Both the position numbers and the translations under genes were made by a program. 18,204 nucleotides of DNA, taken from Octopus sinensis (taxonomy: Eukaryota). The notes under the pieces were generated by a model. The model had not been told where the DNA came from and made no database searches. It worked only from the letters and a program-made list of their open reading frames with translations. Positions 1 through 18,204 of this stretch are shown one piece after another; the stretch's first letter is position 1; the number at the start of each line of letters is the position of its first letter. The stretch is from the NCBI RefSeq assembly GCF_006345805.1, contig NW_021824536.1, positions 1-18,204 on the forward strand. The letters are read 5' to 3'.

Positions 1-111
1 TGGGGTCACTAGAGGGCACCACTGCAGCTCTATTGCTAGTTCCCTTTGTGATTCGCCACCCCGCTTCAGGGTGGACTGCGGGAATTCAGTTGGGGTCAGT
101 GAACAAGTGGT

Positions 112-400
112 GGGCAAGTGGGGGTGGAGGATGAACGGGGGGTGGAGGGGGGAGGGGGGGGGGGCAGGAGGGTGGAGGATGAGGGGGGCAGGAGGGGTGG
201 AGAGATGAGGCAAGCAAGCAAGTCTGAAGGCAGAACATGTAAGTAGTGGTGGTGGATGTAGTAGTATTAGAGGAGTGGTAGTAGTAGTAGTAGTAGTAGT
301 GGTAAAAGTGGTAGCATTGGTGGTGGTCATGGTAGTAATAGCGGTGATGGTGGTGGTGGTGTGGGGTAAATGTAGCAGTCGGTGTTGGTGGTGGGGATAG
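112..400 (+). repeat. G-rich tract (potential G-quadruplex, 116-200) followed by (GTA)n/(GGT)n low-complexity sequence
   Basis: Many G4+ runs including a G12-13 run, then gtagtagta and ggtggtggt repeats. Confidence 0.6.
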
Positions 401-655
401 TAAGCGCTGACGTTAAAACACCTTTCCCCAACCCCAGGTCAGGTCAGGCCTGATCCAGACGTTCCAGTTGTGACCATCCCATCATGTTTTTTGTATAAAA
501 TTTGGACTACATTGCCTGATGTGTCCTTCCTACTACATTATATACATATATGTGTATGTGTGTATGTATATATATTATATATATATATAGATATATACTT
601 TTTTTTTTAAAGATGCTTGGGTGGGGGTGTGATTCGAGGGAGGATTTGGCTGCTA

Positions 656-665
656 TTTATTTATT
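656..665 (-). terminator. Candidate polyadenylation signal (overlapping AATAAA) of the RYBP 3' UTR
   Basis: + strand tttatttatt reads as two AATAAA on the minus strand, about 630 nt after the stop and following U-rich tracts. The true 3' end cannot be determined. Confidence 0.3.
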
Positions 666-1292
666 TATACATAGCAGGTTGAGGGGCCACGTAGCAGAAG
701 AGAGTCCTCGTTGACTTACGGTTAATAATAAAAGTAAAGTCATGTTGTGCATGGGGGTACAATGCCAAATGACAGATGGAATTTTTAAAAAATCTAAAAA
801 AATTCAGATAAATAATAAAAATTAAATTTAAAAAAAAAAATTTTTTTAAATAAAATTTAAAAAAAAAAAAAAAAAAGGGGGGGTGATGATATACAGGGAA
901 CAATATATATATGGACCCCTTCTCCATCTGGCCCCTTAATGTCAAATAATGCAATAGCAAAAACAAAGGGAAACAAACTGACTACAGGGCCCCGCCCCCC
1001 ACCACCACAGTAGGGATCTAGGATTCAAATCGCCAAACTTACCGTTCATTTTAGTTGTTCCCTGATGCTCCCTTCAAGGCTGTCCCCTACTCAACACTGC
1101 GTGTCCCCTCTGAATGCCCTACCCTGAATTTCCTCCGCATCCCCCCCACCCACTTTCCATGCCTTCGTTCCATGACTGCCTCTTCCTCTTCCTCCTCCTC
1201 CTCTCTCTCGCTTGCTCGCAACGCCACCACACTCCCTATAATCTATGTCTATCTCTCCTCCTCCTCCTCTTCCTCTCCGCACCCCTCCGTCC

Positions 1293-1506
1293 TCAGTTGT
1301 TGTCCACGCTCGAGTCCTCGTGGTAGTCGTTGGCTGTGGTTGGTGACGACGTGTCGCTGCTGTCTGAAGGACTGACGTTCTGAGTGTCCGTCGAAGACCG
1401 TCGGTCTTTCTTCGGCTGGTAGTCCGTAATCACCACCGTCACACTACCGACTGTCACTGACATGTGCGTGGCACTGCTCCGGTCAATGTTCTTTAACCGC
1501 GGTGGT
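1293..1506 (-). CDS. RYBP: Terminal coding exon of RYBP/YAF2 (RING1- and YY1-binding protein), C-terminal RING1/RAWUL-binding motif followed by a Ser-rich tail and TGA
   Basis: Translates (R)PPRLKNIDRSSATHMSVTVGSVTVVITDYQPKKDRRSS...DNN*, matching the remembered vertebrate RYBP/YAF2 motif PRLKNVDRS(T/S)AQ.L.VTVG..TVIITDFKEK. Acceptor ttctttgtttgtctttttgtacag|A CCA (phase 2); stop TGA at 1293-1295. Confidence 0.93.
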
Positions 1507-1650
1507 CTGTACAAAAAGACAAACAAAGAATCAATTAGGGGCAAAGAAACTAGTCCAGGCCCTGCTACAATAAAACAAAAAGGGTTTACTTCATCATAAG
1601 CAAGCGCAGTTTACATCAATGCAATAAAATCTACTTCGGTACCATTTTAA

Positions 1651-1854
1651 TACTCTTACTCTCTTTTACTTGTTTCAGTCATTTGACTGCGGCCATGCTG
1701 GAGCACCGCCTTTAATCGAGCAACTCGACCCCGGGACTTATTCTTTTGTAAGCCCAGTACTTATTCTATCGGTCTCTTTGGCCGAACCGCTAAGTGACGG
1801 AGACATAAACACACCAGCATCGGTAGTCAAGCAATGCTAGGGGGACAAACACAA

Positions 1855-1885
<31 letters not shown>

Positions 1886-2066
1886 CGACGGGCTTCTTTC
1901 AGTTTCCTTTTACCAAATCCACTCACAAGGCTTTGGTCGGCCCGAGGCTATAGAAGAAGACACTTGCCCAAGGTGCCACGCAGTGGGACTGAACCCGGAA
2001 CCATGTGGTTGATAAACAAAACACACCAGCATCGGTTGTCAAGCAATGCTAGGGGGACAAACACAA

Positions 2067-2099
<33 letters not shown>

Positions 2100-2470
2100 C
2101 ACATATATACAACGGGCTTCTTTCAGTTTCCGTCTACCAAATCCACTCACAAGGCTTTGGTCGGCCCGAGACTATAGTAGAAGACACTTGCCCAAGGTGC
2201 CATGCAATGGGACTGAACCCAGAACCATGTGGTTGGTAAGCAAGCTACTTACCACACAGCCACTCCTGCGCCTATATATATATATATATATATTATATAT
2301 ATTATATATATATTAACTATACGACAGGCTTCTTTCAGTTTCCGTCTACCAAATCCACTCACAAGGCTTTGGTCGGCCAGAGGCTATAGTAGAAGACACT
2401 TGCCCAAGGTGCCACGCAGTGGGATTGAACCCGGAACCATGTGGTTGGTAAACAAGCTACTTACCACACT
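1651..2470 (-). mobile_element. Composite tRNA-derived SINE (tRNA/CORE-like head, (TA)n(TG)n linker, 3' domain ending gagtaaaa) with two extra head copies
   Basis: 3' domain 1651-1862; heads at about 1885-2010 (truncated), 2110-2273 and 2322-2470. Head has A box tggctgtgtgg, B box ggttcagtccc and the ccttgggcaagt CORE-like motif. The same family recurs many times in the window. Confidence 0.85.
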
Positions 2471-2659
2471 TTCCTCAAAGCTTGCATGGGTCAGACAGAA
2501 TTTATAGAAGCTGTATGCCTTTCCTGGGGCCAAACCTCACCCCTTTCCAAGCAAGGTGAATATGAAGTGGCATCAAAAGTTCCCAGACTAGTTCTATAGC
2601 GCACCAACAGATGGCAGAACATGATTGCATGCGCAGTAACAGGTAGCAGTGACCTTCAT

Positions 2660-2742
2660 GAGGCAGTGTGCCGAATGACAAGAATTTGGAATATGGAAAT
2701 TGTAAAGGTTCTGCCTATAATAATTGGTGCATTAGGGAAAGG
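2660..2742 (+). pseudogene. Possible fossil fragment of an RLE-type non-LTR retrotransposon C-terminus
   Basis: Peptide RIWNMEIVKVLPIIIGALGK resembles the ..LW....V.V.PI.IGALG motif ending the restriction-like endonuclease of R4/HERO/NeSL-type elements (from memory). Confidence 0.35.
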
Positions 2743-2884
2743 CAAAGAGCGAATGGAAAAAAAGAGAGAAAAAGGAGGTAAGGTGAACACTAAGAGAGAA
2801 AGAGGGAAAGAGCTGTATATTAAGTCTATAAAATGGAGCATAAAGTATATAGAGAGTGTATATATATATTTCTCTTTCTCTTTT

Positions 2885-3285
2885 CTCTTTTACTTGTTTC
2901 AGTCATTTGACTGCGGCCATGCTGGAGCACCACCTTTAGTCGAGCAAATCGACCCCAGGACTTATTCTTTGTAAGCCCAGTACTTATTCTATCGGCCTCT
3001 TTTGCCGAACTGCTAAGTGACGGGGACGTAAACACACCAGCATCGGTTGTCAAGCAATGCTAGGGGGACAAACACACACAAACACATATACACACACACA
3101 TATATATATATATATATACATATATACGACAGGCTTCTTTCAGTTTCCGTCTACCAAATCCACTCACAAGGCATTGGTCAGCCCGGGGCTATAGCAGAAG
3201 ACACTTGCCCAAGATGCCACACAGTGGGACTGAACCCGGAACCATGTGGTTGGTTAGCAAGCTACTTACCACACAGCCACTCCTG
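2885..3285 (-). mobile_element. Full composite SINE (same family)
   Basis: 3' domain about 2885-3085, microsatellite, head 3126-3285. Confidence 0.85.
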
Positions 3286-3460
3286 TATATATATATAATT
3301 TTTATTTTATCTAGTTTCAGCTCACAAGCTGTGGCCATGCTGGGGCACCGCCATTTATATATATATATTATAATAATAAGGGGTTTTTGCAACAAGTTGC
3401 TTAAACCACGTACCGAAAATATTAGAAATAGCAGTCAAAGGGCTACTATTTCTTTTAAAA

Positions 3461-3538
3461 AGGCTATAGTAGAAGACACTTACCCAAGGTGCCATGTGGT
3501 TCGTTAGCAAGCTACTTACCACAGAGCCACTCCTACGC

Positions 3539-3577
<39 letters not shown>
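3461..3577 (-). mobile_element. Internally deleted SINE head plus (TA)n
   Basis: ggctatagtagaagacac...ggtgccatgtggtt...cctacgcct, with the B-box segment missing. Confidence 0.7.
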
Positions 3578-3580
<3 letters not shown>

Positions 3581-3802
3581 AAGTGCATAAAGTAATCATC
3601 ATGTTCCAGTTTCCTTTACTTTTCACTGATTAACAGATGAGTGACCATCTTTTGATACAAACACAACACGGGCCACACTTTCAGGTTTTTGGGGGTAAGG
3701 TTTTCAGAAATAACGCAATAACTTTACCATTAATTTCCATGAACTATTCATGGGTCCTGCAAGTAATAATAAAAATAATAATAATAATGATGATGAATTT
3801 AC

Positions 3803-3928
3803 CTGTTGGCCCTCTTTGTCGAATTACTGCTGTGTTTCTCCTTTCTCATCTGACTCTTCTCTTTCTTCGGTGGTGGGGCAAACTGTTGAGAATTCTGTTG
3901 GGCGACATGAGTGTTCAGTCGCGGTTTT
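3803..3928 (-). CDS. RYBP: Penultimate RYBP/YAF2 exon, 126 nt, phase 2-2
   Basis: Translates KPRLNTHVAQQNSQQFAPPPKKEKSQMRKEKHSSNSTKRAN(R), homologous to RYBP [27 protein letters not shown]. Acceptor tttgtatttgtgtttttag|A, donor AG|gtaaat. AG+A splices in frame to the terminal exon (R-PPRLK). Confidence 0.9.
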
Positions 3929-4020
3929 CTAAAAACACAAATACAAAGAGATTGTTATTTATTTATTTATGTACATGTCTGTCTGTGTGTGTGTCTACAT
4001 ATTAGTTAGGAAATCACGTG

Positions 4021-4740
4021 CGCAGGAGTGGCTGTGTGGTAAGTAGCTTGCTTACCAACCACATGTTCCCGGGTTCAGTCCCACTGCGTGGCACCTTGGG
4101 CAAGTGTCTTCTACTATAGCCTCGGGCCAACCAAAGCCTTGTGAGTGGATTTGGTAGACGGAAACTGAAAGAAGACTGTCGTATATGTATATATATATAT
4201 ATCATCATCATCGTTTAACGTCCGCTTTCCTTGCTAGCATGGGTTGGACGGTTCAACTGGGGTCTGGCAAGCTCGAAGGCTGCACCAGGCCAGTCAGATC
4301 TGGCAGTGTTTCTACAGCTGGATGCCCTTCCTAACGCCAACCACTCCGAGAGTGTAGCGGGTGGTTTTATGTGCCACCGACACAGGTGCCAGACGAGGCT
4401 GGCAGACGGCCACGCTCGGATGGTGTTTTTTATGTGCCACCGACACAGGTGCCAGACGAGGCTGGCAGACGCCCACGCTCGGATGGTGTTTTCTTATGTG
4501 CTACCGACATATGTGTGTATGTGTGTGTGTTTGTGTGTCTGTGTTTGTCCCCCTAGCATTGCTTGACAACCGATGCTGGTGTGTTTACGTCCCCGTTACT
4601 TAGCGGTTCGGCAAAAGAGACCGATAGAATAAGTACTGGGCTTACAAAGAATAAGTCCTGGGGTCGATTTGCTCGACTAAAGGTGGTGCTCCAGCATGGC
4701 CGCAGTCAAATGACTGAAACAAGTAAAAGAGTAAAAGAGT
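4021..4740 (+). mobile_element. Composite SINE on + strand, interrupted in its microsatellite linker
   Basis: Head 4021-4180, 3' domain about 4510-4740 ending gtaaaagagtaaaagag. Confidence 0.85.
4201..4495 (-). mobile_element. RTE-type LINE 3' end or RTE-tail SINE with (ATG)n tail, nested in the SINE linker
   Basis: Reverse complement of the 8490-8698 and 15560-15746 family: catcatcgtttaacgtccgctttcc...ctggatgcccttcctaacgccaacc, with about 62-nt subrepeats. Confidence 0.75.
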
Positions 4741-4754
4741 CATCACATCATTGA

Positions 4755-4850
4755 AACCTCAAAGCTATGAGATAATGCCTGATTAATTCAAAACAATTTG
4801 AGTGAAAAATTATTACATTTAACAGAATAATCTGAACACTAAAGGGTTAA
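4755..4850. mobile_element. Possible end of a TTAA-type (piggyBac-like) MITE
   Basis: Ends ...ctgaacactaaagggttaa (GGG followed by TTAA). The other end was not found. Confidence 0.25.
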
Positions 4851-5032
4851 ATATACAACTGTTTTATTTTAAAGTGAATATTGGGGGATAAGCTTCTTAT
4901 ATATTTGGAAGAGTTTTAAAAATTAACGTGTGATCGAAGTTTGAATTAATATTCGGTAATATGATTATATTAAGGAATTTTTAATTGGTGTTTGAATAAG
5001 TGTGTGTGTATAAAATAAAAGTTTTTACATAC

Positions 5033-5119
5033 GGGCTAAGAGAAGTACATTCGTCATCAGGGGAATCGGTCCACTCGTAGAGTTTGGCACTGGTAGGTGT
5101 CAGGTGTGACTTTCGTTTT
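5033..5119 (-). CDS. RYBP: Candidate RYBP cassette exon, 87 nt, phase 2-2 (KRKSHLTPTSAKLYEWTDSPDDECTSLS)
   Basis: Acceptor aaattgttttgttccag|A, donor CC|gtatgt. GC-richer island in AT-rich intron, open in the RYBP frame. No homology recognised. Confidence 0.6.
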
Positions 5120-5169
5120 CTGGAACAAAACAATTTAAAGGTATATATTATACGAGTACGGGTACAGGA

Positions 5170-5263
5170 TTGTGTGTATAAATGCACACACATACACACA
5201 CAATCACTTACATACAAATAGATGGACGCACACACACATACAATCACTTACATACAGACATAT

Positions 5264-5299
<36 letters not shown>

Positions 5300-5835
5300 A
5301 CAATCACTTACATACAGACATATGCACACACACACACACACACACGTACAATCACTTACATACAGACATATGCACACACACACACACACGTACAATCACT
5401 TACATACAGACATATGCACACACACACACACACAACACGTACAATCACTTACATACAAATAGACATACGCACACACACGTACAATCACTTACATACAGAC
5501 ATATGCACACACCACACACACACACACGTACAATCACTTACATACAGACATATGCACACACACACACGTACAATCACTTACATACAGACATATGCACACA
5601 CACACACACACGTACAATCACTTACATACAAATAGACATACGCACACACACGTACAATCACTTACATACAAATACACATACACACACACACGTACAATCA
5701 CTTACATACAGACATATGCACACACACACACACGTACAATCACTTACATACAAATAGACACACACACACACACGTATAGTCACTTACATACAAATAGACA
5801 TACACACACACATACATACAATCACTTACATACAG
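5170..5835. repeat. Minisatellite, 15 units of about 40-60 nt: cacgtacaatcacttacataca(g/a)a(c/t)a..(CA)n
   Basis: Core (a/g)tcacttacatac counted 15 times between about 5201 and 5832; spacing varies with (CA)n length. Confidence 0.9.
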
Positions 5836-6180
5836 ACATCCAAAAGATATATTCTTACATATATATAACGAGAGGATGAGAGAGAAAAACAGAAGCAAAC
5901 AGAGGGGGTCATTGCAATTTATGGACAGAACCTGATTGACAACCCCCCCTCTCCCCAGGGGCATAAAGAGGAATAAACTCACATATATAAACAGAGGAGG
6001 CGGCATGGAGTATATTCACACAAATAAACAGAGAGAATGAGGGAGATGTTAGGGTGTCTGATATCATATAAGTCAGGGCTGAACCAGAACCAGTACCACC
6101 AAATAGCGGCAGGGCCGAAACTGCTGTGCCGAAACGTCCCATTATGAGACCAAATGGCCTGAGATTGGGGAGCTACTCAC

Positions 6181-6267
6181 TTGATGATGCCGGATTCTTT
6201 ATCGTTCGATGTGTCAGTACATTCAGCTGGTTTCTCATTTGACATGCTTAAAGAGGATTTTTTGGGT
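6181..6267 (-). CDS. RYBP: Candidate RYBP cassette exon, 87 nt, phase 2-2 (PKKSSLSMSNEKPAECTDTSNDKESGII)
   Basis: Strong acceptor tttttttttcttctacag|A, strong donor AA|gtgagt, open in the RYBP frame. Confidence 0.7.
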
Positions 6268-6350
6268 CTGTAGAAGAAAAAAAAAATATTAAAAAAAAAA
6301 ACGAAAAACATTTAAAAAAAACATGAAAAGAAATTCTTCAAAACTATTTA

Positions 6351-6739
6351 TTCTTTTACTCTTTTACTTGTTTCAGTCATTTGACTGCGGCCATGCTGGA
6401 GCACCGCCTTTAATCGAGCAACTCGACCCCAGGACTTATTCTTTTGTAAGCCCAGTACTTATTCTATTGGTCTCTTTTGCCGAACCGCTAAGTAACGGGG
6501 ACATAAACACACCAGCATCGGTTGTCAAGCAATGCTAGGGGGACAAACACAGACATACAAACACACACACACATACATACATAAATATATATATATATAC
6601 ATATATACGACAGGCTTCTTTCAGTTTCCGTCTGCCAAATCCACTCACAAGGCATTGGTCGGCCCAAGGCTATAGTTGAAGACACTTGGCCAAGATGCCA
6701 CGCAGTGGGACTGAACCCGGAACCACACAGCCACTCTGC
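6351..6739 (-). mobile_element. Composite SINE with an internal head deletion (acca..acca microhomology)
   Basis: 3' domain 6351-6575; head 6607-6739 reads gaacccggaacc|acacagccactc. Confidence 0.8.
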
Positions 6740-6751
6740 AACAATGTAATA

Positions 6752-6753
<2 letters not shown>

Positions 6754-6796
<43 letters not shown>
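6754..6796 (-). repeat. T43 homopolymer (A43 on the minus strand)
   Basis: Direct count. Confidence 0.9.
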
Positions 6797-6799
<3 letters not shown>

Positions 6800-6929
6800 T
6801 TCTGTGGTGAGGGTCAGCTGCATTAACCCATCCCCATCAGTTAGCCATGCCTGGAGTAGTAGGCCCAGTCGAAACACGCACATGGATCTCGATTGGAAGC
6901 TGGCTTGTGACCTGTGGATGTCACGTGCC

Positions 6930-7892
6930 GACCGGCCCGACACATGTGGTTCACAGCAACAGATAGGAGGAGAAGTGCATCCAATTCTGGTACCCCAGAG
7001 ATCAAGCGCTGACCGCCCGACACATATGTTTCACAGCAACAGATAGGAGGAGAAGTGCATCCAATTCTGGTACCCCAGAGATCAAGCGCTGACAGCCCGA
7101 CACATATGTTTCACAGCAACAGATAGGAGGAGAAGTGCATCCAATTCTGGTACCCCAGAGATCAAGCGCTGACAGCCCGACACATATGTTTCACAGCAAC
7201 AGATAGGAGGAGAAGTGCATCCAATTCTGGTACCCCAGAGATCAAGCGCTGACGGCCCGACACATATGTTTCACAGCAACAGATAGGAGGAGAAGTGCAT
7301 CCAATTCTGGTACCCCAGAGATCAAGCGCTGACCGCCCGACACATATGTTTCACAGCAACAGATAGGAGGAGAAGTGCATCCAATTCTGGTACCCCAGAG
7401 ATCAAGCGCTGACAGCCCGACACATATGTTTCACAGCAACAGATAGGAGGAGAAGTGCATCCAATTCTGGTACCCCCAGATCAAGCGCTGACGGCCCGAC
7501 ACATATGTTTCACAGCAACAGATAGGAGGAGAAGTGCATCCAATTCTGGTACCCCCCCAGATCAAGCGCTGACAGCCCGACACATATGTTTCACAGCAAC
7601 AGATAGGAGGAGAAGTGCATCCAATTCTGGTACCCCAACCGAGATCAAGCGCTGACAGCCCGACACATATGTTTCACAGCAACAGATAGGAGGAGAAGTG
7701 CATCCATTCTTGGTACCCCAGAGATCAAGCGCTGACGCCGACACATGGGTTCACAGCAACAGATAGGAGAAGAAGTGCATCCAATTCTGGTACCCCAGAG
7801 ATCAAGCGCTGACGGCCCAACACATATGTTTCACAGCAACAGATAGGAGGAGAAGTGCATCCAATTCTGGTACCCCAGAGATCAAGCGCTGA
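6930..7892. repeat. 80-nt tandem repeat, 12 near-identical copies
   Basis: agatagga anchor at 6961, 7041, 7121, 7201, 7281, 7361, 7441, 7520, 7601, 7684, 7761 and 7841; unit cacatatgtttcacagcaacagataggaggagaagtgcatccaattctggtaccccagagatcaagcgctgacNgcccga. Confidence 0.97.
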
Positions 7893-8317
7893 TGGAGCAG
7901 AAAACAGCCACCCAATGAACAAGCAGCTGCCACTGGCACCTAGACGAAAAGCAGCGGACTGAGCCCCCGTGCAATCACGGTGAGCATACATATCTATACA
8001 CTGGGCCTTCATCCATTGCGATCTTCCCTCTGTCCTACCCCATCGGCCCACTTATCCCCCTACCATTCCCAATGCCCTCTCATTTCTACCACCACCTCCC
8101 CGACTAACTATACCTCCATACCTCCCCCTTCTGAACTACTCCTGTATCTTTCACTCCAAAACACCCCACACTGGTAGTTCCTCACCATCCATGTCTCCAC
8201 CCTTGTTCATCACTCCCTACATTCACTACCACCCCTATCTTTAGCCATCTCTTACTCTCCCCTCACATCATCACTATCAGAATCATCATTTAACATCCGC
8301 TTTCCTGTTTGAGTGTG

Positions 8318-8698
8318 GCCATTGCCAGTACCCACAACATTCTCGGAGTGGTTGGCGTTAGGAAGGGCATCCAGCTGTAGAAACACTGCCAAATCAAGAT
8401 TGGAGCCTGGTGCAGCCACCTGGTTCGCCAGCCCTCAGTCAAAATCATCCAACTCATGGAAAGCGTGTAAAAAGATTCGAGCGAGGTTATTGCCAGTACC
8501 GCCTGACTGGCCCCTGTGCTGGTGGCACGTAAAAAGCACCCACTACACTCTCGGAGTGGTTGGCGTTAGGAAGGGCATCCAGCTGTAGAAACTCTGCCAG
8601 ATCAAGATTGGAGCCTGGTGCAGCCATCTGGTTCGCCAGCCCTCAGTCAAAATCGTCCAACCCATGCTAGCATGGAAAGCGGACGTTAAACGATGATG
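8318..8698 (+). mobile_element. Two adjacent copies of the RTE-type 3' tail, the second ending aaacgatgatg
   Basis: tctcggagtggttggcgttaggaagggcatccagctgtagaaac occurs at about 8341 and about 8549. Confidence 0.75.
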
Positions 8699-8857
8699 GG
8701 CTTCGTTTAGTTTCCATCTACCAAATCCACTAACAAGGCTTTGGTCGGCCCGAAGCTATAGTAGAAGACACTTGCCCAAGGTGCCACGCAGTGGGGCTGA
8801 ACTCAGAACCATGTGGTTGGTAATCAAGCTACTTACCACACTGCCACTCCTGTGCCT
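8698..8857 (-). mobile_element. SINE head (tRNA/CORE-like)
   Basis: Same head family, slightly diverged. Confidence 0.8.
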
Positions 8858-8877
8858 ACTTGTTTCAGTCATTAGAC

Positions 8878-9520
8878 CAGTGGTTTTCAACCAGGGTTCT
8901 GCGGAACCTTAGGCTTCTGCCAGTACAGTCCAGGGGTTCCGCAAGAAGTTACAAAACTGCTAAAATCGGCAGTAATTTTTAATTCTCCTGTGCAGATATA
9001 CTCTGTTTTACTCTTTTTAATTGTTTCAGTCATTTGACTGCGGCCATGCTGGAGCACCGCCTTTAGTCAAGGAGATCGACCCCGGGACTTATTCTTTGTA
9101 AGCCCAGTACTTATTCTATTGGTCTCTAATGCCGAACCGCTAAGTGATGGGGACGTAAACACACCAGCATCGGTTGTCAAGCAATGCAAGGGGGACAAAC
9201 ACAGACACACAAACATACACGCACACATACACATATATATATATATATACACATATATACGACAGGCTTCTTTCAGTTTCTGTCTACCAAATCCACTCAC
9301 AAGGCATTAGTCGGCCCGAGGCTATAGCAAAAGACACTTGCCCAAGATGCCACGCAGTGGAACTGAACCCGGAACCATGTGGTTGGTTAGCAAGCTACTT
9401 ACCACACAGCCACTCCTGCGCCTGTGTGCATAAGGCTATTAAATTATTGCACAGGGGTTCCTCGAGCCAGTGGAATGTTTCCTTGGGGTTCCGTTCCAGC
9501 AAAAAGTTTGAAAAGCACTG
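8878..9520. mobile_element. Non-autonomous hAT (Charlie/Tip100-like) element with 8-bp TSD
   Basis: Left TIR cagtggttttcaa (8878), right ttgaaaagcactg (ending 9520); flanks cattagac (8870-8877) and cattggac (9521-9528), a 7/8 match. Confidence 0.8.
9007..9423 (-). mobile_element. Full composite SINE nested in the hAT element
   Basis: 3' domain, linker and head all present, ending ctcctgcgcct at 9423. Confidence 0.85.
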
Positions 9521-9597
9521 CATTGGACAGTGGCCATGCTGGAGCACCACTTTTAGAAACAACAACAGTAACAAAATGACTATAAAAATGGACTCAC

Positions 9598-9642
9598 CTG
9601 TCTTTTGTAGTTGCAGATTTTTTTGTCTCTGGATTTTCTTTT
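9598..9642 (-). CDS. RYBP: Candidate RYBP small exon, 45 nt, phase 2-2 (KENPETKKSATTKD)
   Basis: Acceptor tttctctcctcctctccatccacag|A, consensus donor CAG|gtgagt, open in the RYBP frame, Lys-rich like RYBP linkers. Confidence 0.65.
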
Positions 9643-9846
9643 CTGTGGATGGAGAGGAGGAGAGAAATAATAGTCAGACGAAATGATTATACAGCTGAGA
9701 AGATCAGTGTAAGATCATCTAAACCTCTTGTACTTGTTTTCAGTCATTGGAGTGCGGTCATTCTGGGGCACTGATTTGAAGAGTTTTAGTCAAATGAAGT
9801 GACCCAAGAATTTCTTTTCTTTTTATAAAGACTGTTACATATTCTA

Positions 9847-10436
9847 TTGGGTTGTCCGGAAAGTTTGTGCCGATTTTTAAAGGAAAGAAAAAGGTCAATA
9901 AATAGTTGCCATTACATTTTTAATCAACCAAATATGAACCATTTTGTTGCACAATGCGTCTCCATCTTTCCTTTAACTTGAAAAATACCCTCTTCCCAGA
10001 ATTGAGGTTGTTTCATGGCAAAGAATTCATCAAGGTATCTTTTTACGTCATCCAAAGAATTGAAATTTTTACCATTAAGACTATTCTGCAGAGACCTGGA
10101 TAAGTGGAAATCCGAAGGAGCAATATCTGGTGAATATGGAGGGTGGGGTAACACATCCCAGCCGAGCTGCAGCAATTTTTGTCTGGTTCCCGAAGCATCA
10201 AATGCCGAAAATGAACTTTCTTATCTTCCATTTTAAAGGGTTACAGAATTAACACAGGTTATAGGAACACAAACCTCCTTCCACGAAAATATAGCTTAAA
10301 CATGGATTTTCCTCTTCAGGTGCCAAGCCCACTGATGGTGATGTAGTCAAATCCTATCTTATGGTCTCGACCATGTTCTAAAATAAGTCGAAAGGTAAGC
10401 TACTATAAATTGGCACAAACTTTCCGGACAACCCAA
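9847..10436 (-). mobile_element. Internally deleted mariner (Tc1/mariner) element, 590 bp
   Basis: 30-bp TIRs 9847-9876 and 10407-10436 (29/30 identical), TA at 9845-9846. Minus strand encodes the N-terminus MEDKKVHFRHLML fused out of frame to the C-terminal transposase LLQLGWDVLPHPPYSPDIAPSDFHL (YSPDLAP motif). Confidence 0.92.
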
Positions 10437-10681
10437 CAGCTAAGTTACAGGAACAGAAACAAACACTGGTCACAAAGAAGTGGTGGGGAACAAACATAAG
10501 CACATATAGCTATAGCAACCTCTTCCTCTTCCAGTCATTTCAGTATGCGGATGCCATCTAACTGACATATGCATGTTCTTTTCTTCCTTCATTTTTTCTC
10601 CCCTCATCTGCTCTTTCTGTAGATGAGTGTATACTCAAAATGTAAAAGAATTTTCCTTCTATTTTTCCAGAACATAAAACT

Positions 10682-10853
10682 GAGTGGCTGTGTGGTAAGT
10701 AGCTTGTTTACCAACCACATGGTTCCGGGTTCAGTCCCACTGTGTGGCACCTTGGGCAAGTGTCTTCTACTATAGCCTTGGACCGACCAAAGCCTTGTGA
10801 GTGGATTTGGTAGACGGAAACTGAAAGAAGCCTGTCGTATATATGTATATATA

Positions 10854-10886
<33 letters not shown>

Positions 10887-11049
10887 AGGCGCAGGAGTGG
10901 CTGTGTGGTAAGTAGCTTGCTTACCAACCACATGGTTCTGGGTTCAGTCCCATTGCATGGCACCTTGGGCAAGTGTCTTCTACTATAGCCTCGGACCGAC
11001 CAAAGCCTTGTGAGTGGATTTGGTAGACGGAAACTGAAAGAAGCCCGTC

Positions 11050-11090
<41 letters not shown>

Positions 11091-11320
11091 TGTGTGTGTT
11101 TGTGCATCTGTGTTTTTCCCCCTGGCATTGCTTGACAACCGATGCTGGTGTGTTTATGTCCCCGTTACTTAGCGGTTCGGCAAAAGAGACCGATAGAATA
11201 AGTACTGGGCTTACAAAAGAATAAGTCCCGGGATCGAGTCGCTCGATTAAAGGCAGTGCTCCAGCATGGCCGCAGTCAAATGACTGAAACAAGTAAAAGA
11301 GTAAAAGAGAGTAAAGAGTT
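10682..11320 (+). mobile_element. Composite SINE on + strand with two heads
   Basis: Heads 10682-10838 and 10887-11049, (TA)n(TG)n linker, 3' domain about 11100-11320. Confidence 0.85.
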
Positions 11321-11379
11321 TTACAACTCTTTTTCATGTTATTTATAATTTTTGCACTACACAGACACACACACACACG

Positions 11380-11640
11380 AAGGGCTTCTTTCATTTCGCT
11401 CCTCTATCAAATCCACTTATAACGCCAGGTCTAAAGTAGATGGCAATTACTCAAGGTGTCATGCAGTGGGACTGAACCTGGAACCATGTGATTGAGAAGG
11501 AAACTTCTTATCAGACAGCTTCACTCAAAATACTACATTACTTCATTTTCCACAATTCCTCTCTGAGGAGTGATTGGCATTAGTAAGGGCATCCAGCCAT
11601 AAGGGTAACCCTGCCAAAATAGATACAGTGAAGCCATGGG
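11380..11640. mobile_element. Old diverged SINE head (minus) and RTE-tail remnant (plus)
   Basis: gggcttctttca...atgcagtgggactgaacctggaaccatgtg; then ggagtgattggcattagtaagggcatccagc. Confidence 0.5.
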
Positions 11641-11682
11641 CAGTTACTTACTTGTTACTTGTGACGGCATAATGTATATATG

Positions 11683-11722
<40 letters not shown>

Positions 11723-11851
11723 TATATATATATGTGGTGTGTATATATATGTGTGTATATATATATATGTGTATATATATGTGTATATATATGTGTATGT
11801 ATATATATGTATATATACATTAACATAAATATACATATAGATAAATATATA

Positions 11852-12260
11852 AGGCGCAGGAGTGGCTGTGTAGTAAGTAGCTTGCTATCCAACCACATGG
11901 TTCCGGGTTCAGTCCCACTGCATAGCACCTTGGGCAAGTGTCTTCTGCTATAGCCTCGGGCCAACCAAAACTCCGGGTGGGTTGAGCCGGCTTCTTCTCT
12001 TTTTGAAGAAGTTTCCTGGGAATATTGAATTCACAAGCGGTCCCCGACATCCCGCATGCATATCCCGAGTAACGGGACGCCCTGTTTGCCGCGGAGTCTC
12101 CACAGACGCAGGGACTGAACGACCTTGGAGCTGCCGGTTGCCGATCAGACGCCTCTTGGAGTGCAGTCTTCTGCCTAGCCAGCTCTACGTCAAACCGTCC
12201 CAACCCATGCCAGCATGGAAAGCAGATGTTAAATGATGATGATGATAATGACGATGATGA
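11852..12260 (+). mobile_element. Chimeric retroposon: 5'-intact SINE head (11852-11969) fused to a GC/CpG-rich segment ending in an RTE-type tail and (GAT)n
   Basis: The head breaks at ccaaccaaa|actccggg; the end is caaaccgtcccaacccatgccagcatggaaagcagatgttaaatgatgatgatg. Confidence 0.6.
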
Positions 12261-12576
12261 AATATAAATAATTCTATCAATCTCCTTTGCTGATCAGCTA
12301 AGTTACGGGGCTGTAAACACACCACATCACCAGCTATGGGCTTCTTTTAGTTTCCATCTACCAAATCCATTCACAAGGCTTTGATTGGTTTGAGGCTATA
12401 ATAGAAGATACCTCCTCAGGGTGCCATGCAGTGGGATTGAACCCGGAGCCACATGGTTGGGAGGCAAACATTTTACCTCACTGCCACGCCTCCACCTATA
12501 TACATACATTTTTTTTTTTTTTTTTTGTACTTGTTTCAGTCATTTGACTGCGGCCATGCTGGAGCACCGCCTTTTA

Positions 12577-12743
12577 GAGTGGTGAAAGAGTACAGCAGGG
12601 ATCACCACCTCCTGCCGGAGCCTCGTGGAGCTTTTTAGGGTTTTTTTCGCTCAATAAACACACTCAACGCCCGGTCTGGGAATCGAAACCGCGATCCTCC
12701 GACCGCAAGTCCGCTGCCCTAACCACTAGGCCATTGCGCCTCC
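12577..12743 (-). mobile_element. Second tRNA-derived SINE family
   Basis: Minus strand ggaggcgcaatggcctagtggttagggcagcggac...gcggtttcgattcccagacc with clear A and B boxes. There is no acceptor stem or CCA context, so it is not called a tRNA. Confidence 0.7.
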
Positions 12744-13240
12744 ATATACATATACATATATATATAATATATACACACGCACAGACTTCAAATACACAGC
12801 ATATATATATACTCATACAGACTCACTCACATGTGCATCTATCAACACTTTTATATATACATGTCCACATCTATCTCTTCACATATGCATATATATACAC
12901 ACACATATATATATACAAATGTATGTCTATATATTTTTATATATAGTGCCTGGTTTGTGTTGAAAACTTGACACCTGTTTAAACACTGGCTCAGTGTGTG
13001 TGTACGTGGCTCAGTATGAGTGTGTGTACGTGTCTCAGTATGTGTGTGCTGGTATGTGTATGGACGTACACACACACACACACATTTATATACACCCGTT
13101 GGCACACTTACTAAAATACACAAACAGTTTATTTTTAGTGCTACATGTATACACCCACAATTATTTATGTAAACAGCGTGCGACAGTCACTCACATGTAT
13201 ATGAATGTGTGTGTGTAACATATGTCTGTATATCTGGGTC

Positions 13241-13279
<39 letters not shown>

Positions 13280-13404
13280 ATGTGTAAGCCTATCCAATTT
13301 CCTTAGGGACCCCACAATGTTAAATATACATATATATACATATATATATACACACGTATATATATACACATATATAGATTACACATATATATACACATAT
13401 ATAG

Positions 13405-13456
<52 letters not shown>

Positions 13457-13475
13457 TATATACACATATATATAT

Positions 13476-13508
<33 letters not shown>

Positions 13509-13561
13509 CATACATATATATACATATATATACATACATATATATACTATATTATACATAC

Positions 13562-13604
<43 letters not shown>

Positions 13605-13730
13605 ACTATATTTACAGGTACATATAAACATATACGTTAACATAAATATACATATAGATAAATATACATATAGAGATACATATATACACACATACACATA
13701 TCTATTTATCTATATATATATATATATATT
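12744..13730. repeat. Compound (TA)n/(CA)n/(TG)n/(TACA)n microsatellite field (a similar field lies at 11663-11850)
   Basis: Direct reading; source of the spurious YI/CV/HT ORFs. Confidence 0.9.
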
Positions 13731-13764
13731 ATAAGGTATACTTGCCATCTCAATATGGCTAACC

Positions 13765-13861
13765 ACTAAGGGTGGGTGTTACTGTAGCTTGTAGCACCAG
13801 GAGAACATTGGGAGACGATGTTGTCCTGGGGCTACAAGCTACAGTAACACCCACCCTTAGT
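13765..13861. other. 97-nt near-perfect inverted repeat (hairpin or tiny MITE)
   Basis: Perfect 31-bp arms 13765-13795 and 13831-13861; pairing continues inward (ccagga/tcctgg, aacat/atgtt) to a loop of about 5 nt. Confidence 0.9.
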
Positions 13862-14409
13862 TCATACCTCGTTCAGAGATTTATTATTGCTTATATAATA
13901 TATATATATTATATATATATAACACACACACACACACGCATATATACATATTCATGTATATACATACTTACACACACACACACATAAATAAACATATATA
14001 TATACCTAAACACATATACAGACATAAACATACATAAATATATATGATAAAGAGTAGCAGACTGGTGGAGATACACTACACAGCCAATTAGGGGACATCT
14101 AGGCAAGCTGTGACAAAGACCGAGACAAAGGGACAGGGGACAGACTCTCCAAGAAACAAGGTGTCTGACAAACAGACAGACAGACAGGAACAATACAAAA
14201 ACAAACGTGAACTGACAGCAGGACAGTAATGAGGGATTGTGATCCTAACGAGGCAAAGGGGGACATCACTGGATAAATGTGGACGGGGGGGACGCATAAG
14301 TGGACACTGATTTTGACAAGTGGACAGGAGGTACTTGTTGATAGGCATGCTGCAAGAAAGGGGGAGGCGGCACAGGTGGACACTGAGACTGACAGGAGGA
14401 CGGGGTAGA

Positions 14410-14824
14410 TAGGTGGACAGTAATGCTGACAAGTGGACAGGAGGTACATGCAGACGGTGATGTGGACAGGAAGGGAGACACAGGTGGACAGTGATGCTGA
14501 CAAGTGGACAGGAGGTACATGCAGACGGTGATGTGGACAGGAAGGGAGACACAGGTGGAGAGTGATGCTGACAAGTGGACAGGAGGTACATGCAGACGGT
14601 GATGTGGACAGGAAGGGAGACACAGGTGGAGAGTGATGCTGACAAGTGGACAGGAAGTACATGCAGACGGTGATGTGGACAGGAAGGGAGACACAGGTGG
14701 ACAGTGATGCTGACAAGTGGACAGGAGGTACATGCAGACGGTGATGCGGACAGGAAGAGAGACACAGGTGGACAGGAGGTACATGCAGACGGTGATGTGG
14801 ACAGGAAGGGAGACACAGGTGGAC
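14410..14824. repeat. 71-nt tandem repeat (about 4.5 full units plus two shortened units)
   Basis: gacaagtggac anchors at 14428, 14499, 14570, 14641 and 14712; degenerate related motifs extend to about 14270. Confidence 0.92.
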
Positions 14825-14861
14825 CAACAACAAAAGAGAGAAGATATTGAGGAGGAAGTAC

Positions 14862-14957
14862 CGTTTTGTGTGGTGGTCACCATCTCGCAGGGAGCCGGAA
14901 TACAGGGACTGGTTGAGATGGGGACTCGGTGGTGAATAGCTTAGAGCAGGACTATGT
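14862..14957 (-). CDS. RYBP: Candidate RYBP cassette exon, 96 nt, phase 2-2 (HSPALSYSPPSPHLNQSLYSGSLRDGDHHTK)
   Basis: Strong acceptor tctctttcttctctccatttcag|A; donor CG|gtactt is weak. Open in the RYBP frame. Confidence 0.55.
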
Positions 14958-15094
14958 CTGAAATGGAGAGAAGAAAGAGATCAGAGTTGAAGCAGGACAT
15001 AATGGAACACAACACCACGGCTGGTGCAGATGTATATAGCGTTGTTATATACACATGAACATCGAAATAAATATCAAATGGAAACAGCAGTTGT

Positions 15095-15746
15095 GATACC
15101 TGTGCCGATGGCACGTAAAAATCACCATCCGAACATGGCCGTTGCCAGCCTTGAATGGCTTCTGTGCCGGTGACACGTAAAAAGCACCATCCGAACGTGG
15201 CCGATGCCAGTGCCGCCTTGACTGGTTTCTGTGCCGGTGGCACATAAAAAGCACCATCCGAACGTGGCCAATGCCAGACTCCCCTGGCTTCTGTGCCGGT
15301 GGAACGTAAAAAGCACCACCCAAACATGGCCGATGCCAGCGCCGCCTCGACTGGCTTCTGTACCGGTGGCACGTAAAAAAAGCACCATCTGAACGTGACC
15401 GATGCCAGTGCTGCCTCGACTGGCTTCTGTGCCGGTGGCACATAAAAAGCACCATCCGAATGTGGCCGATGCCAGCGCCGCCTTAACTGGCTTCTGTGCC
15501 TGCGGCACGTAAAAAGCACCAACCGATCGTGACCGCTGCTAGTCTCCCCTGGCACCTGTGCTGGTGGCACGTAAAAAGCACCCACTACACTCACGGAGTA
15601 GTTGGCGTTAGGAAGGGCATCCAGCTGTAGAAACACTGCCAGATCAGACTGGAGCCTGGTGCAGCCTATTGGGTTCCCAGTCCTCAGTCAAATCGTCCAA
15701 CCCATGCTAGCACGGAAAATGGACATTAAACGATGATGATGATGAT
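15095..15746 (+). mobile_element. RTE-type 3' end with 8 tandem 62-69-nt subrepeats and (ATG)n tail
   Basis: aaaa(g/t)cacc anchors at about 15122, 15184, 15251, 15313, 15382, 15449, 15516 and 15578, followed by the family tail. Confidence 0.8.
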
Positions 15747-15789
15747 ACACATGAAAATACAACTGTATAATAAATAAACCTTTATACTA

Positions 15790-16231
15790 TAGGCAAAAGG
15801 CTTGAAATTTTGCAGAGTCAATTACATCAACCCCAGTACGCAACTGGTACTCATTTTATCAACCCCAAAAGGATGAAAGCATAAATCGACCTTGGCAGAA
15901 TTTGAACTCAGAACGTAAAGATGGACAAAATGTCACTAAGCGTTTTACCCAGCGTGCTAACAACTCTGCCAGCTCACTGCTTTATATTGCAACAAAAACA
16001 ACAAGAATAATAATAGTTTCAAATTTTGCCACAAGGGCAGCAATTTTGGGGGAGGAGAGGGGTCGATTACATTGACCTCACTTTTCAACTGGTACTTATT
16101 TTGTTGACCCCAAAAGGATGAAAGGAAAAGTCGACCTTGGTGGAATTTGAACTCAGAACATAGCGGCAAGCAAAATATTGCTAAGCATTTTGCCTGAAGT
16201 GCTAACAATTCTGCCACCTTTCTGCCTTAAC

Positions 16232-16264
<33 letters not shown>

Positions 16265-16430
16265 CCTTTCTATTATAGACACAAGGCCTGAAACTTGGGG
16301 GGAAGGGGATGAGTCGATCACATCGACCCCCAGTAGGCAACTGGTACTTAAATAATCAACCCCGAAAGGATGAAAGGTAAATTTGACCTTGGTGGAATTT
16401 GAACTCAAAATGTAAAGACAGGAGAAATAC
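15790..16430 (-). mobile_element. Three consecutive diverged copies of a third tRNA-derived SINE family (central tttcatccttt.ggggt.gataaaat.agtaccagttg domain, Meta-SINE-like from memory)
   Basis: Copies at about 15795-15980, 16012-16225 and 16262-16430, separated by (AAC)/(AAT)n; B box gagttcaaattc in each. Confidence 0.7.
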
Positions 16431-16467
16431 TATGAAGTAGAGGTAATGACACTGCTAGCTTGGATGA

Positions 16468-16500
<33 letters not shown>

Positions 16501-16616
16501 CGACCACCACAACAACAATAAAAATAATAATCCTCTCTAATATAAGCACGAGACCTGAAATTTGGAAGATGGTTATTCAATTACATTGAGACGTTTTTAG
16601 GAAGCCACATCTCACA

Positions 16617-16735
16617 TCATCATCATCATCGTTTAGCGTCCGCTTTCCATGCTAGCATGGGTTGGACGGTTCAGCTGGGGTCTGGGAAGCCAGATGGCTG
16701 CACCAGGCTCCAGTCTGATCTGGCAATGTTTCTTC
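16617..16735 (-). mobile_element. Truncated RTE-type 3' tail
   Basis: catcatcatcgtttagcgtccgctttccatgctagcatgggttggacgg. Confidence 0.7.
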
Positions 16736-16817
16736 TACCATAAAGACTTGTGCCTTGGATGGGAACTTTCTAGATGCAATCCCCTAGTCACTCATGATCG
16801 AATGGAGTCTCCACATA

Positions 16818-17911
16818 TACTTTTACTTGTTCCAGTCATTTGATTGTGGCCATGCTGGAGCACCGCCTTTAATCAAGCAACTCGACCCTGGGACTTATTC
16901 TTTGTAAGCCCAGTCCTTATTCTATCGGTCTCTTTTTGCCGAACCGCTAAGTGACGGGGACGTAAACACACCAGCATCGGTTGTCAAGCGATGCTAGGGG
17001 GACAAACACAGACACACAAACACACACATATATATATATATACATATATACGACAGGCTTCTTTCAGTTTCCGTCTACCAAATCAAGGCATTGGTCGGCC
17101 CGGGGCTAATGCTATAGCAGAAGACACTTGCCCAAGATGCCACAGCCAGTGGGACTGAACCCGGAACTATGTGGTTGGTTAGCAAGCTACTTACCACACA
17201 GCCACTCCTGCGCCTATGTATATACATATATACGACGGGCTTCTTTCAGTTTCCGTCTACCAAATCAAGGCATTGGTCGGCCCGGGGCTATAGCAGAAGA
17301 CACTTGCCCAAGATGCCACGCAGTGGGACTGAACCCGGAACTATGTGGTTGGTTAGCAAGCTACTTACCACACAGCCACTCCTGCGCCTATGTATATACA
17401 TATATACGACGGGCTTCTTTCAGTTTCCGTCTACCAAATCAAGGCATTGGTCGGCCCGGGGCTATAGCAGAAGACACTTGCCCAAGATGCCACGCAGTGG
17501 GACTGAACCCGGAACTATGTGGTTGGTTAGCAAGCTACTTACCACACAGCCACTCCTGCGCCTATGTATATACATATATACGACGGGCTTCTTTCAGTTT
17601 CCGTCTACCAAATCAAGGCATTGGTCGGCCCGGGGCTATAGCAGAAGACACTTGCCAAGATGCCACGCAGTGGGACTGAACCCGGAACTATGGTGGTTGG
17701 TTAGCAAGCTACTTACCACACAGCCACTCCTGCGCCTATGTATATACATATATACGACGGGCTTCTTTCAGTTTCCGTCTACCAAATCAAGGCATTGGTC
17801 GGCCCGGGGCTATAGCAGAAGACACTTGCCCAAGATGCCACGCAGTGGGACTGAACCCGGAACTATGTGGTTGGTTAGCAAGCTACTTACCACACAGCCA
17901 CTCCTGCGCCT
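16818..17911 (-). mobile_element. Composite SINE whose head is tandemly amplified x5 (174-nt period)
   Basis: 3' domain 16818-17030; heads start at 17051, 17233, 17407, 17581 and 17755. Confidence 0.92.
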
Positions 17912-18204
17912 ATATATATATATATAAATTTGAAATGGGCGACTCTTGTCTTGGGATTCACGGTCAAACGGCTGGATGGAATTGCGCGAAAAATTACATG
18001 GATGTGTAGAATGATCCGGTGGTGATGCTGGGCTTTGTATTTTTTCATAGCTCCCATGGTTACTGAGATAATCTACTATAATAATACTCTTGTGTTTATG
18101 AATGAGAAAGGAAGGGGTGATAGATGAATAAGGAAGGAGGGAATGATGTCATACTTGGTAGTGGGATGATGAAAATTGTACACTGAAAAATAAATCAAAC
18201 AGCG

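Follow-up and report, generated by a model that had tools for sequence, protein, structure and literature searches.

Extra coding exons, shared with cuttlefish, between the zinc finger and the KPR segment of an octopus RYBP/YAF2 gene

Variant Polycomb repressive complex 1 (PRC1) spreads histone H2A monoubiquitinated at Lys119 (H2AK119ub1) through a positive feedback that is driven by RYBP/YAF2. The closest described systems are human RYBP and YAF2 (PDB 8PP6 and 9DBY for the NZF finger and the acidic-patch loop, and 3IXS for the hairpin), which contain an N-terminal RanBP2/NZF finger, the GTSTR and KPRxN...QQ...PPPKKEK motifs, and the PF17219 hairpin. In the 2024 cryo-electron microscopy structure of RYBP-PRC1 on the H2Aub1 nucleosome, residues 47-58 of RYBP form a loop that lies over the acidic patch of H2A, an interaction in which R47, R53 and R56 are central; when these three arginines are mutated to alanine together, binding falls three- to fourfold and the formation of H2Aub1 on arrays is severely impaired (PMC11257959). 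An RYBP/YAF2 gene is located on an 18,204-nucleotide (nt) stretch of the Octopus sinensis genome (RefSeq assembly GCF_006345805.1, contig NW_021824536.1, positions 1 to 18,204), which is the whole stretch of DNA analysed and is termed the window. The human motifs, the hairpin and an intron that splits the R53 codon at the equal place are common to the cephalopod gene, and the finger is present in its orthologs from Sepia and Octopus bimaculoides. However, R53, K54, P55 and R56 are unbroken in human RYBP, whereas the cephalopod proteins carry from 105 residues (exons of the window) to 140 residues (Sepia) between R53 and K54.

The gene is the single RYBP/YAF2 ortholog of octopus, and the window carries its 3' two-thirds on the minus strand. 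A sequence scan identifies six exon segments on this strand, each with a pyrimidine tract and AG before it and GT after it, the last one ending in TGA. Exon A (14862-14957, 96 nt) encodes (R)HSPALSYSPPSPHLNQSLYSGSLRDGDHHTK(R), exon B (9598-9642, 45 nt) encodes KENPETKKSATTKD(R), exon C (6181-6267, 87 nt) encodes PKKSSLSMSNEKPAECTDTSNDKESGII(K), and exon D (5033-5119, 87 nt) encodes KRKSHLTPTSAKLYEWTDSPDDECTSLS(P), which includes a KKRK patch and SAKLYEWTDSPDD. In each of these four exons a single A completes the split codon, the last two bases begin another codon, and only this frame is free of stops. They sum to 315 nt and 105 residues. The segments E and F likewise start with a base that completes a split codon and are open in this frame alone. 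Exon E (3803-3928, 126 nt) is the ancestral KPRLNTHVAQQNSQQFAPPPKKEK... exon, equivalent to human RYBP from residue 54 onward, and exon F (1293-1506, 214 nt) is the last coding exon, which contains the Yaf2/RYBP RING1B-binding motif and the stop codon (TGA, 1293-1295). Exons A to E are all of phase 2-2. The spliced product reads (R)HSPALS...HHTK-R-KENPE...TKD-R-PKKSS...GII-K-KRKSH...SLS-P-KPRLNTHVAQQ...DNN, followed by the stop.

In the Pfam scan, exon F gives a match to PF17219, the Yaf2/RYBP C-terminal motif (E = 1.6e-18, 66 bits, cut-off 22.4), and the A-D linker gives none; the exon F product also matches chain B of PDB 3IXS. Exon E aligns with K54-P-R-I-N of human RYBP, contains the conserved KPRxN..QQ..PPPKKEK segment, and gives tblastn matches from many phyla; among 27 homologs, K230, P231, Q244 and K250 of this region are invariant and R232 is nearly so. 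Conservation of these motifs suggests that the octopus protein may bind RING1B and H2AK119ub1. All five introns of the window are of phase 2, and the positions and phases of the finger/KPR intron and of the ...NR/PPRLK intron are the same as those in Sepia pharaonis and the abalone Haliotis rubra. The zinc-finger exon and two further exons known from Sepia (exon X and a microexon) are not found in the window, in which a W.C..C motif is absent from both strands, and these three exons must therefore lie upstream of position 18204. The PF00641 finger is detected in the orthologous Sepia transcripts (E = 1.3e-9) and in a fragmentary O. bimaculoides model (P0024). An earlier note on this DNA had assigned the locus to RYBP/YAF2, as the PF17219 match also does, and had placed the four exon-like islands A-D between the finger and the KPR exon. 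The positions, lengths, splice sites and frames that it gave for the islands are confirmed on the minus strand, and splicing the six exons yields its peptide without a single difference, down to the R, R, K, P and R at the junctions. The KPR exon (exon E) is present and homologous as it proposed, with its extent adjusted to that given above.

The islands are recovered as exons in cuttlefish. A protein search with the spliced octopus product retrieves a Sepia protein of 341 residues (P0001; 82% identity, 100% query coverage, PF00641 and PF17219), which is encoded without introns on nine Sepia RNA sequencing contigs of 1.1-1.5 kb (Logan assemblies) in the order zinc finger-X-A-B-C-D-E-F. The run accessions behind several Sepia contigs are given in Sepia esculenta transcriptome papers (e.g. 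PMC9538352, PMC10442824). This protein reads ...CDVRKGTSTR-SLGQVLQAQKTIWERQASPKLMTTVHA-R-HSPALSYSPPSPHINQSLFSSALKEVDHVK-R-KENPEVKKTAAPKD-R-PRKSSLPPSNEKQAESTDSSNDKDPTII-K-KRKSHLAPSSAKLYEWTDSPDDDCPSLS-P-KPRLNTHVAQQ..., in which the order of A, B, C and D and the residues at their junctions agree with the prediction and the additional 28-residue exon X precedes A. Thus, the Sepia mRNAs, as well as the S. pharaonis models, join GTSTR to KPR through these exons, as the earlier note had anticipated. The 90% clusters include the annotated RYBP proteins of S. (Acanthosepion) pharaonis, CAE1253801.1 (349 residues) and CAE1253803.1 (318 residues). When the cuttlefish RYBP transcript product is used as a tblastn query, exons A, B, C and D are matched with E values of 2e-10, 0.009, 6e-7 and 8e-14, respectively. 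The O. bimaculoides contig LGKD02014783.1 carries A, B, C, D and F. Exons A-D are single-copy in the window, in the S. pharaonis locus and in the O. bimaculoides locus, and none of them matches a repeat of the window. These results indicate that the four islands are genuine coding exons located between the zinc-finger and KPR exons.

Comparison with O. bimaculoides shows that the exons are 94-100% identical, that the 150-nt flanks are approximately 72-80% identical upstream and less so downstream, and that the introns are only about 72-80% identical and rich in insertions and deletions; the upstream flank of exon C is left out of this comparison because of an assembly gap. The octopus of the window is thus closely related to O. 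bimaculoides but distinct from it. The two octopus sequences differ at no site in A or B, at one in C, at five in D and at eight in F. All 14 differences are synonymous (six synonymous and no non-synonymous for A-D alone), and the exon F protein is 100% identical. Between octopus and Sepia, the proportions of non-synonymous (pN) and synonymous (pS) differences in A-D are 0.13 and 0.67, the ratio of the corresponding rates (dN/dS) is approximately 0.09, and a single in-frame codon insertion or deletion is found. This substitution pattern indicates that the block of extra exons is under purifying selection. In LGKD02014783.1, an N-run (6617-9482) covers the O. bimaculoides KPR exon, and nothing upstream of exon A is found on that contig. 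The public models of this species, which are a 188-residue 'YAF2-like' protein, a 50-residue finger and a 111-residue metaclust sequence, are fragments or chimeras with repeat-derived exons. The models P0003, P0024 and P0035 are fragmentary because exon E falls in the assembly gap.

Exons C and D, which are adjacent, 87 nt long and of phase 2-2, are separated by 1061 nt in octopus and by 492 nt in Sepia. When their products are aligned in register, 8 of 29 residues are identical in octopus and 13 of 29 in Sepia, and the BLOSUM62 scores are 31 and 53, respectively, as compared with -13 +/- 10 for shuffled sequences (P <= 5e-5, 20,000 shuffles). This similarity indicates that C and D are paralogs that arose as tandem duplicates of one 87-nt exon.

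A Sepia mRNA was mapped onto the S. pharaonis locus, in which the gene spans 98 kb. The gene consists of ten exons separated by nine introns, all of which are GT-AG and of phase 2, and the internal exons are 123 (finger), 24, 84, 93 (A), 45 (B), 87 (C), 87 (D) and 126 (E) nt long. The zinc-finger exon therefore ends in phase 2 in Sepia, as the earlier note had expected. The exon order, boundaries and phases coincide with those predicted for octopus, although the cuttlefish belongs to a different cephalopod order, its gene has much longer introns, and its exon A is one codon shorter (93 instead of 96 nt). The Sepia block comprises six extra exons (24, 84, 93, 45, 87 and 87 nt). Between the finger and exon A lie the 24-nt microexon (FHDTTITR), which is alternatively used and is located at 59022-59045 of the S. 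pharaonis locus, and the 84-nt exon X (SLGQVLQAQKTIWERQASPKLMTTVHA), which is located at 72854-72937. The H. rubra gene consists of four coding exons; its three introns are of phase 2 and lie at equivalent positions, and the 27-kb finger/KPR intron, one of the three, contains no linker homolog. Because all introns are of phase 2 (three in abalone, nine in cuttlefish and five in the octopus window), any internal exon, including the zinc-finger exon, could be skipped in frame. The 2-2 symmetry of A-D is therefore forced by their birth inside a phase-2 intron and is not a sign of modular use. The arrangement indicates that the extra exons arose in one ancestral phase-2 intron, which interrupts the codon for the arginine corresponding to R53 of human RYBP.

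The insert is not seen in the homologs of other animals. All non-cephalopod homologs inspected, which are those of gastropods, bivalves, Lingula, an annelid, hemichordates and arthropods and the canonical vertebrate forms, run from GTSTR straight into KPR, in agreement with the lineage-specific insert suggested in the earlier note. YAF2 of non-cephalopod lophotrochozoans (H. rubra, Lingula, Pinctada and Littorina, among others) is the product of an orthologous gene in which three phase-2 introns at equal positions separate four coding exons; no exon lies between finger and KPR, and the proteins are 160-250 residues long and read GTSTRKPR directly. In an exhaustive HMMER search of 1.84 billion representative proteins with a profile of the A-D linker, only the Sepia cluster is a genuine match (E = 2e-37). 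A 1784-residue tandem-repeat coiled-coil protein (P0141; E = 3e-4, 11 stretches) was also retrieved and was rejected as a spurious linker homolog. A search with the Sepia finger, microexon, X and A retrieves 467 finger-containing YAF2/RYBP proteins from many phyla and no new cephalopod protein, and misses Sepia itself. An alignment of the octopus and Sepia linkers, used as a query, gives no match. Both searches are uninformative on squid, Nautilus and octopus transcripts, because the word index evidently misses such low-complexity proteins. Thus, the block is common to Octopodiformes and Decapodiformes and is not detected elsewhere, squid and Nautilus being outside the comparison. Because it is shared by octopus and cuttlefish, it probably dates to the coleoid ancestor. 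The exons are already present in one public automated cuttlefish annotation, that of S. pharaonis; a literature search for RYBP and cephalopods gives one incidental mention and no paper describing the block.

Predicted vertebrate YAF2 isoforms provide the nearest parallel. Those of mouse (X1, 24 residues), alligator, the lizard Hemicordylus, skate and the characin fish Salminus also carry an in-frame cassette between GTSTR and KPR in the equivalent phase-2 intron. In contrast to the conserved, mostly constitutive multi-exon block of cephalopods, these are lineage-restricted, minor predicted isoforms with single short exons of 13-25 residues, which are related neither to one another nor to the cephalopod block. 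Since unrelated inserts are found at the same junction, new exons have arisen repeatedly in the finger/KPR intron. A literature search on YAF2 splice variants at this junction gave nothing helpful.

The site of the insert was located by HMMER alignment to human RYBP. Residues 47-97 of the Sepia protein align with human residues 2-53, and the Sepia protein from residue 230 onward aligns with human residue 54 onward. Because the alignment breaks at 53/54, R53 and K54 are the residues that directly flank the insert. The codon of R53 is divided by the ancestral intron (AG/A or AG/G), and R53 is rebuilt in all observed isoforms, while K54-P55-R56 is displaced by 105-140 residues. The 105-residue insert is rich in Ser, Lys, Pro, Thr and Asp. 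It consists of 37% Ser, Thr and Pro, contains 17 Lys/Arg and 15 Asp/Glu residues and six Ser/Thr-Pro sites, and forms the KKRK patch across the C/D junction. An AlphaFold2 run on the 27-sequence alignment gives confidence scores (predicted local distance difference test, pLDDT) of 71-90 for the finger and 80-86 for the hairpin. Exon X is modelled as a helix at residues 99-114 (pLDDT of approximately 77), directly after the R53 equivalent, and pLDDT is below 50 across A-D, where no secondary structure is predicted. This model suggests that the A-D segment is probably disordered or flexible. Conservation within it is in islands, which are HSPALSYSPPSPH in exon A and KKRKSHL.P.SAKLYEWTDSPDD in exon D. 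Stretches of 14 residues in exon A and 13 residues in exon D are identical between octopus and Sepia, with more variable sequence around them.

The use of these exons was surveyed in 52 Sepia contigs and the two S. pharaonis models. Exon A is present in 50 contigs and missing from two, and the microexon is present in 36 contigs. Four isoforms, with or without the microexon and with or without exon A, are seen in all combinations. The Sepia proteins P0001 and P0002 differ in the use of exon A, as does P0023 from P0029 and P0030. In contrast, X, B, C and D are never missing from the Sepia contigs or from either S. pharaonis model. In the Sepia contig L010, from which exon A is skipped, the X/B junction is exact at the nucleotide level, and the two S. 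pharaonis models differ by exon A, which is contained in CAE1253801.1 and absent from CAE1253803.1. The block is thus mostly constitutive in Sepia, the only cassettes being exon A, which is usually included, and the 24-nt microexon. The donor site of exon A (ACG/GTACTT) has 5/9 consensus matches and is the weakest of the set; with the microexon included, the weakest donors are those of exon A and the microexon (4-5/9). In exons A and B, 13 of 32 synonymous sites are changed between octopus and Sepia, whereas C-F have changes at 96 of 111 (Fisher P = 6e-7), and the first 60 nt of exon A are approximately 92% identical between octopus and Sepia, that is, across two cephalopod orders. A local RNA hairpin does not explain the synonymous conservation of exon A, since its fold is ordinary (z = -0.45). 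The low synonymous divergence of A and B and the weakest donors fit a splicing-regulatory constraint on a cassette exon. The KPR exon begins with T in Sepia (position 97297 of the S. pharaonis locus) and with A in octopus (position 3928), a difference that is silent at the D/E junction (CCN, Pro). A direct splice from the finger to exon E would encode Ser in place of R53 in Sepia, and Arg (GTSTR-KPR) in octopus. The T at the start of Sepia exon E therefore argues against a selected linker-less isoform in Sepia.

These results leave part of the earlier note standing. It had described A-D as optional exons, and exon A is a true cassette in Sepia, whereas B, C and D are never skipped in the 52 Sepia contigs. 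The bank of up to 16 combinations is not borne out, since exon A (2/52 contigs) is the only window exon ever missing, and the symmetry that was read as modular design is forced, every intron being of phase 2 in abalone as well. The size of the bank, put at four, is too small, because Sepia has two more exons (24 and 84 nt) between the finger and exon A. The spacer role survives in so far as a lengthening of the linker is inferred, but the insert is more than a spacer, since it splits the acidic-patch loop between R53 and K54.

Two readings of the islands other than a mostly constitutive block have to be weighed. The islands might have no place in the octopus RYBP mRNA, being instead pseudo-exons that arose by chance, exonised repeats or exons of another, nested gene. 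The bare criteria of a pyrimidine tract, AG, GT, a length of 3n and an open phase-2 frame yield 33 candidates over the 14.3 kb that lie upstream of exon E, as compared with 17 +/- 6 in Markov shuffles; most of the 33 belong to the tandem arrays with 71-nt and 67-nt units or to short interspersed nuclear elements (SINEs). Bare splice-site and frame criteria therefore do not single out the four islands, which are validated by outside evidence. This many chance candidates in the same introns would favour such a reading, as would the omission of the islands from the NCBI models of O. bimaculoides (P0003). However, the orthologous Sepia exons are spliced into RYBP mRNA, every A-D substitution relative to O. 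bimaculoides is synonymous, and the islands, unlike the repeats of the window, are single-copy. The O. bimaculoides models are broken by the assembly gap over exon E, and one of them (P0035) reads ...DDECTSLSP/KPRLN across the D-E junction. It is therefore extremely unlikely that the islands are not RYBP exons. Alternatively, A-D might be independent cassettes of a freely modular linker, giving up to 16 isoforms, including a GTSTR/KPR form, by which the spacing is tuned from tissue to tissue. Every combination of A-D would be in frame, because all four are 3n long and of phase 2-2; all octopus exons start with A, so that an arginine is rebuilt after the finger and a splice from the finger to E gives GTSTR-KPR; the microexon and exon A are combinatorial in Sepia; and the excess synonymous conservation in A and B is typical of regulated exons. 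Nevertheless, free modularity is doubtful, because B, C and D are present in 52 of 52 Sepia contigs and both S. pharaonis models, because the symmetry stems from the ancestral intron and is common to all exons, including clearly constitutive ones, because the finger-to-E splice in Sepia would give Ser for the key Arg, which argues that this junction is not under selection there, and because the donors of B, C and E are strong.

The block is quite probably a coleoid, mostly constitutive, selected and disordered insert in the acidic-patch loop, which provides a longer tether and is tuned by splicing to a limited extent. The insert would separate the two halves of this loop, in such a way that R47 and R53 stay beside the ubiquitin-reading finger and K54-P55-R56 is at least 105 residues away, and the split loop may re-tune the reading of H2AK119ub1 nucleosomes by RYBP. 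The tether between the reader and the RING1B-binding hairpin would be lengthened from approximately 45 to approximately 150-185 residues, which may give the read-write loop of PRC1 a wider reach. The insert would also bring a KKRK patch resembling a nuclear localization signal, six Ser/Thr-Pro sites and the invariant SAKLYEWTDSPDD motif, which probably docks a partner, and inclusion or skipping of exon A (HSPALSYSPPSPH...) would allow a limited tuning of isoforms. It is possible, but rather unlikely, that the linker mainly docks a partner specific to cephalopods, or works as a switch under kinase control, through SAKLYEWTDSPDD and HSPALSYSPPSPH, with no role as a spacer or in acidic-patch binding. 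The concentration of conservation in short islands identical between octopus and Sepia, the six Ser/Thr-Pro sites and a dN/dS of approximately 0.09, which is below what a spacer of mere length needs, speak for docking. On the other hand, no known domain or motif family matches the linker, it has no known partner, and docking is compatible with an insert that splits the loop rather than exclusive of it. Several points weigh against the insert in the loop as the preferred explanation. No octopus transcript is found, so that inclusion of A-D in octopus rests on orthology and selection, and the window does not reach the zinc-finger exon and the two linker exons upstream of A. The counts are of assembled contigs from a few larval or juvenile datasets, not of junction reads, and tissue-specific skipping of B-D is possible. 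The low pLDDT of A-D may partly stem from a shallow linker alignment. KPRLN is fully conserved in cephalopods despite its displacement, which may reflect a finger-independent role or a linker-less isoform. The re-tuning of acidic-patch binding, the longer tether, nuclear localization and docking are functions proposed from the human structure.

The window is dense in SINE-like and tandem repeats. The A-B intron contains a truncated element at 9844-10439, bounded by 36-nt terminal inverted repeats (9844-9879 and 10404-10439) that are 92% complementary, with an 83-residue open reading frame (9924-10175) that carries a transposase C-terminus with ...PHPPYSPDIAPSDFHL.... We take this element to be mariner-like from its terminal inverted repeats and a PHPPYSPDxAPSD motif; the Pfam scan of the open reading frame at 9924-10175 gives no family at E <= 0.01. 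Tandem arrays are found at 5185-5839 (16 copies of a CA-rich 40-nt unit), 6935-7892 (12 copies of 80 nt, 95% matches), 14411-14824 (five copies of 71 nt, the array beginning 38 nt past the donor of exon A), 15100-15582 (seven copies of 67 nt) and 17033-17926 (five copies of a 174-nt SINE-like unit). A poly(A) run of 47 nt is located at approximately 6754-6800.

The coordinates given here permit a correct model of the octopus gene, the public O. bimaculoides models being fragmented over the assembly gap. The general lesson of this locus is that the phase symmetry of a new exon follows the phase of its host intron and is no evidence of modular use. Cephalopods are an animal group known for unusual transcriptome plasticity. 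Splicing at the R53 codon, through the microexon, the helix-forming exon X and the cassette A, might switch PRC1 feedback in coleoids between modes that differ in nucleosome affinity and reach, although we regard this as improbable. Such a switch would represent a lineage-specific rewiring of the spreading of H2AK119ub1 by Polycomb. A block placed between R53 and K54, and maintained by purifying selection since octopus and cuttlefish split, is a natural experiment on the acidic-patch loop and on the length of the tether between reader and writer.

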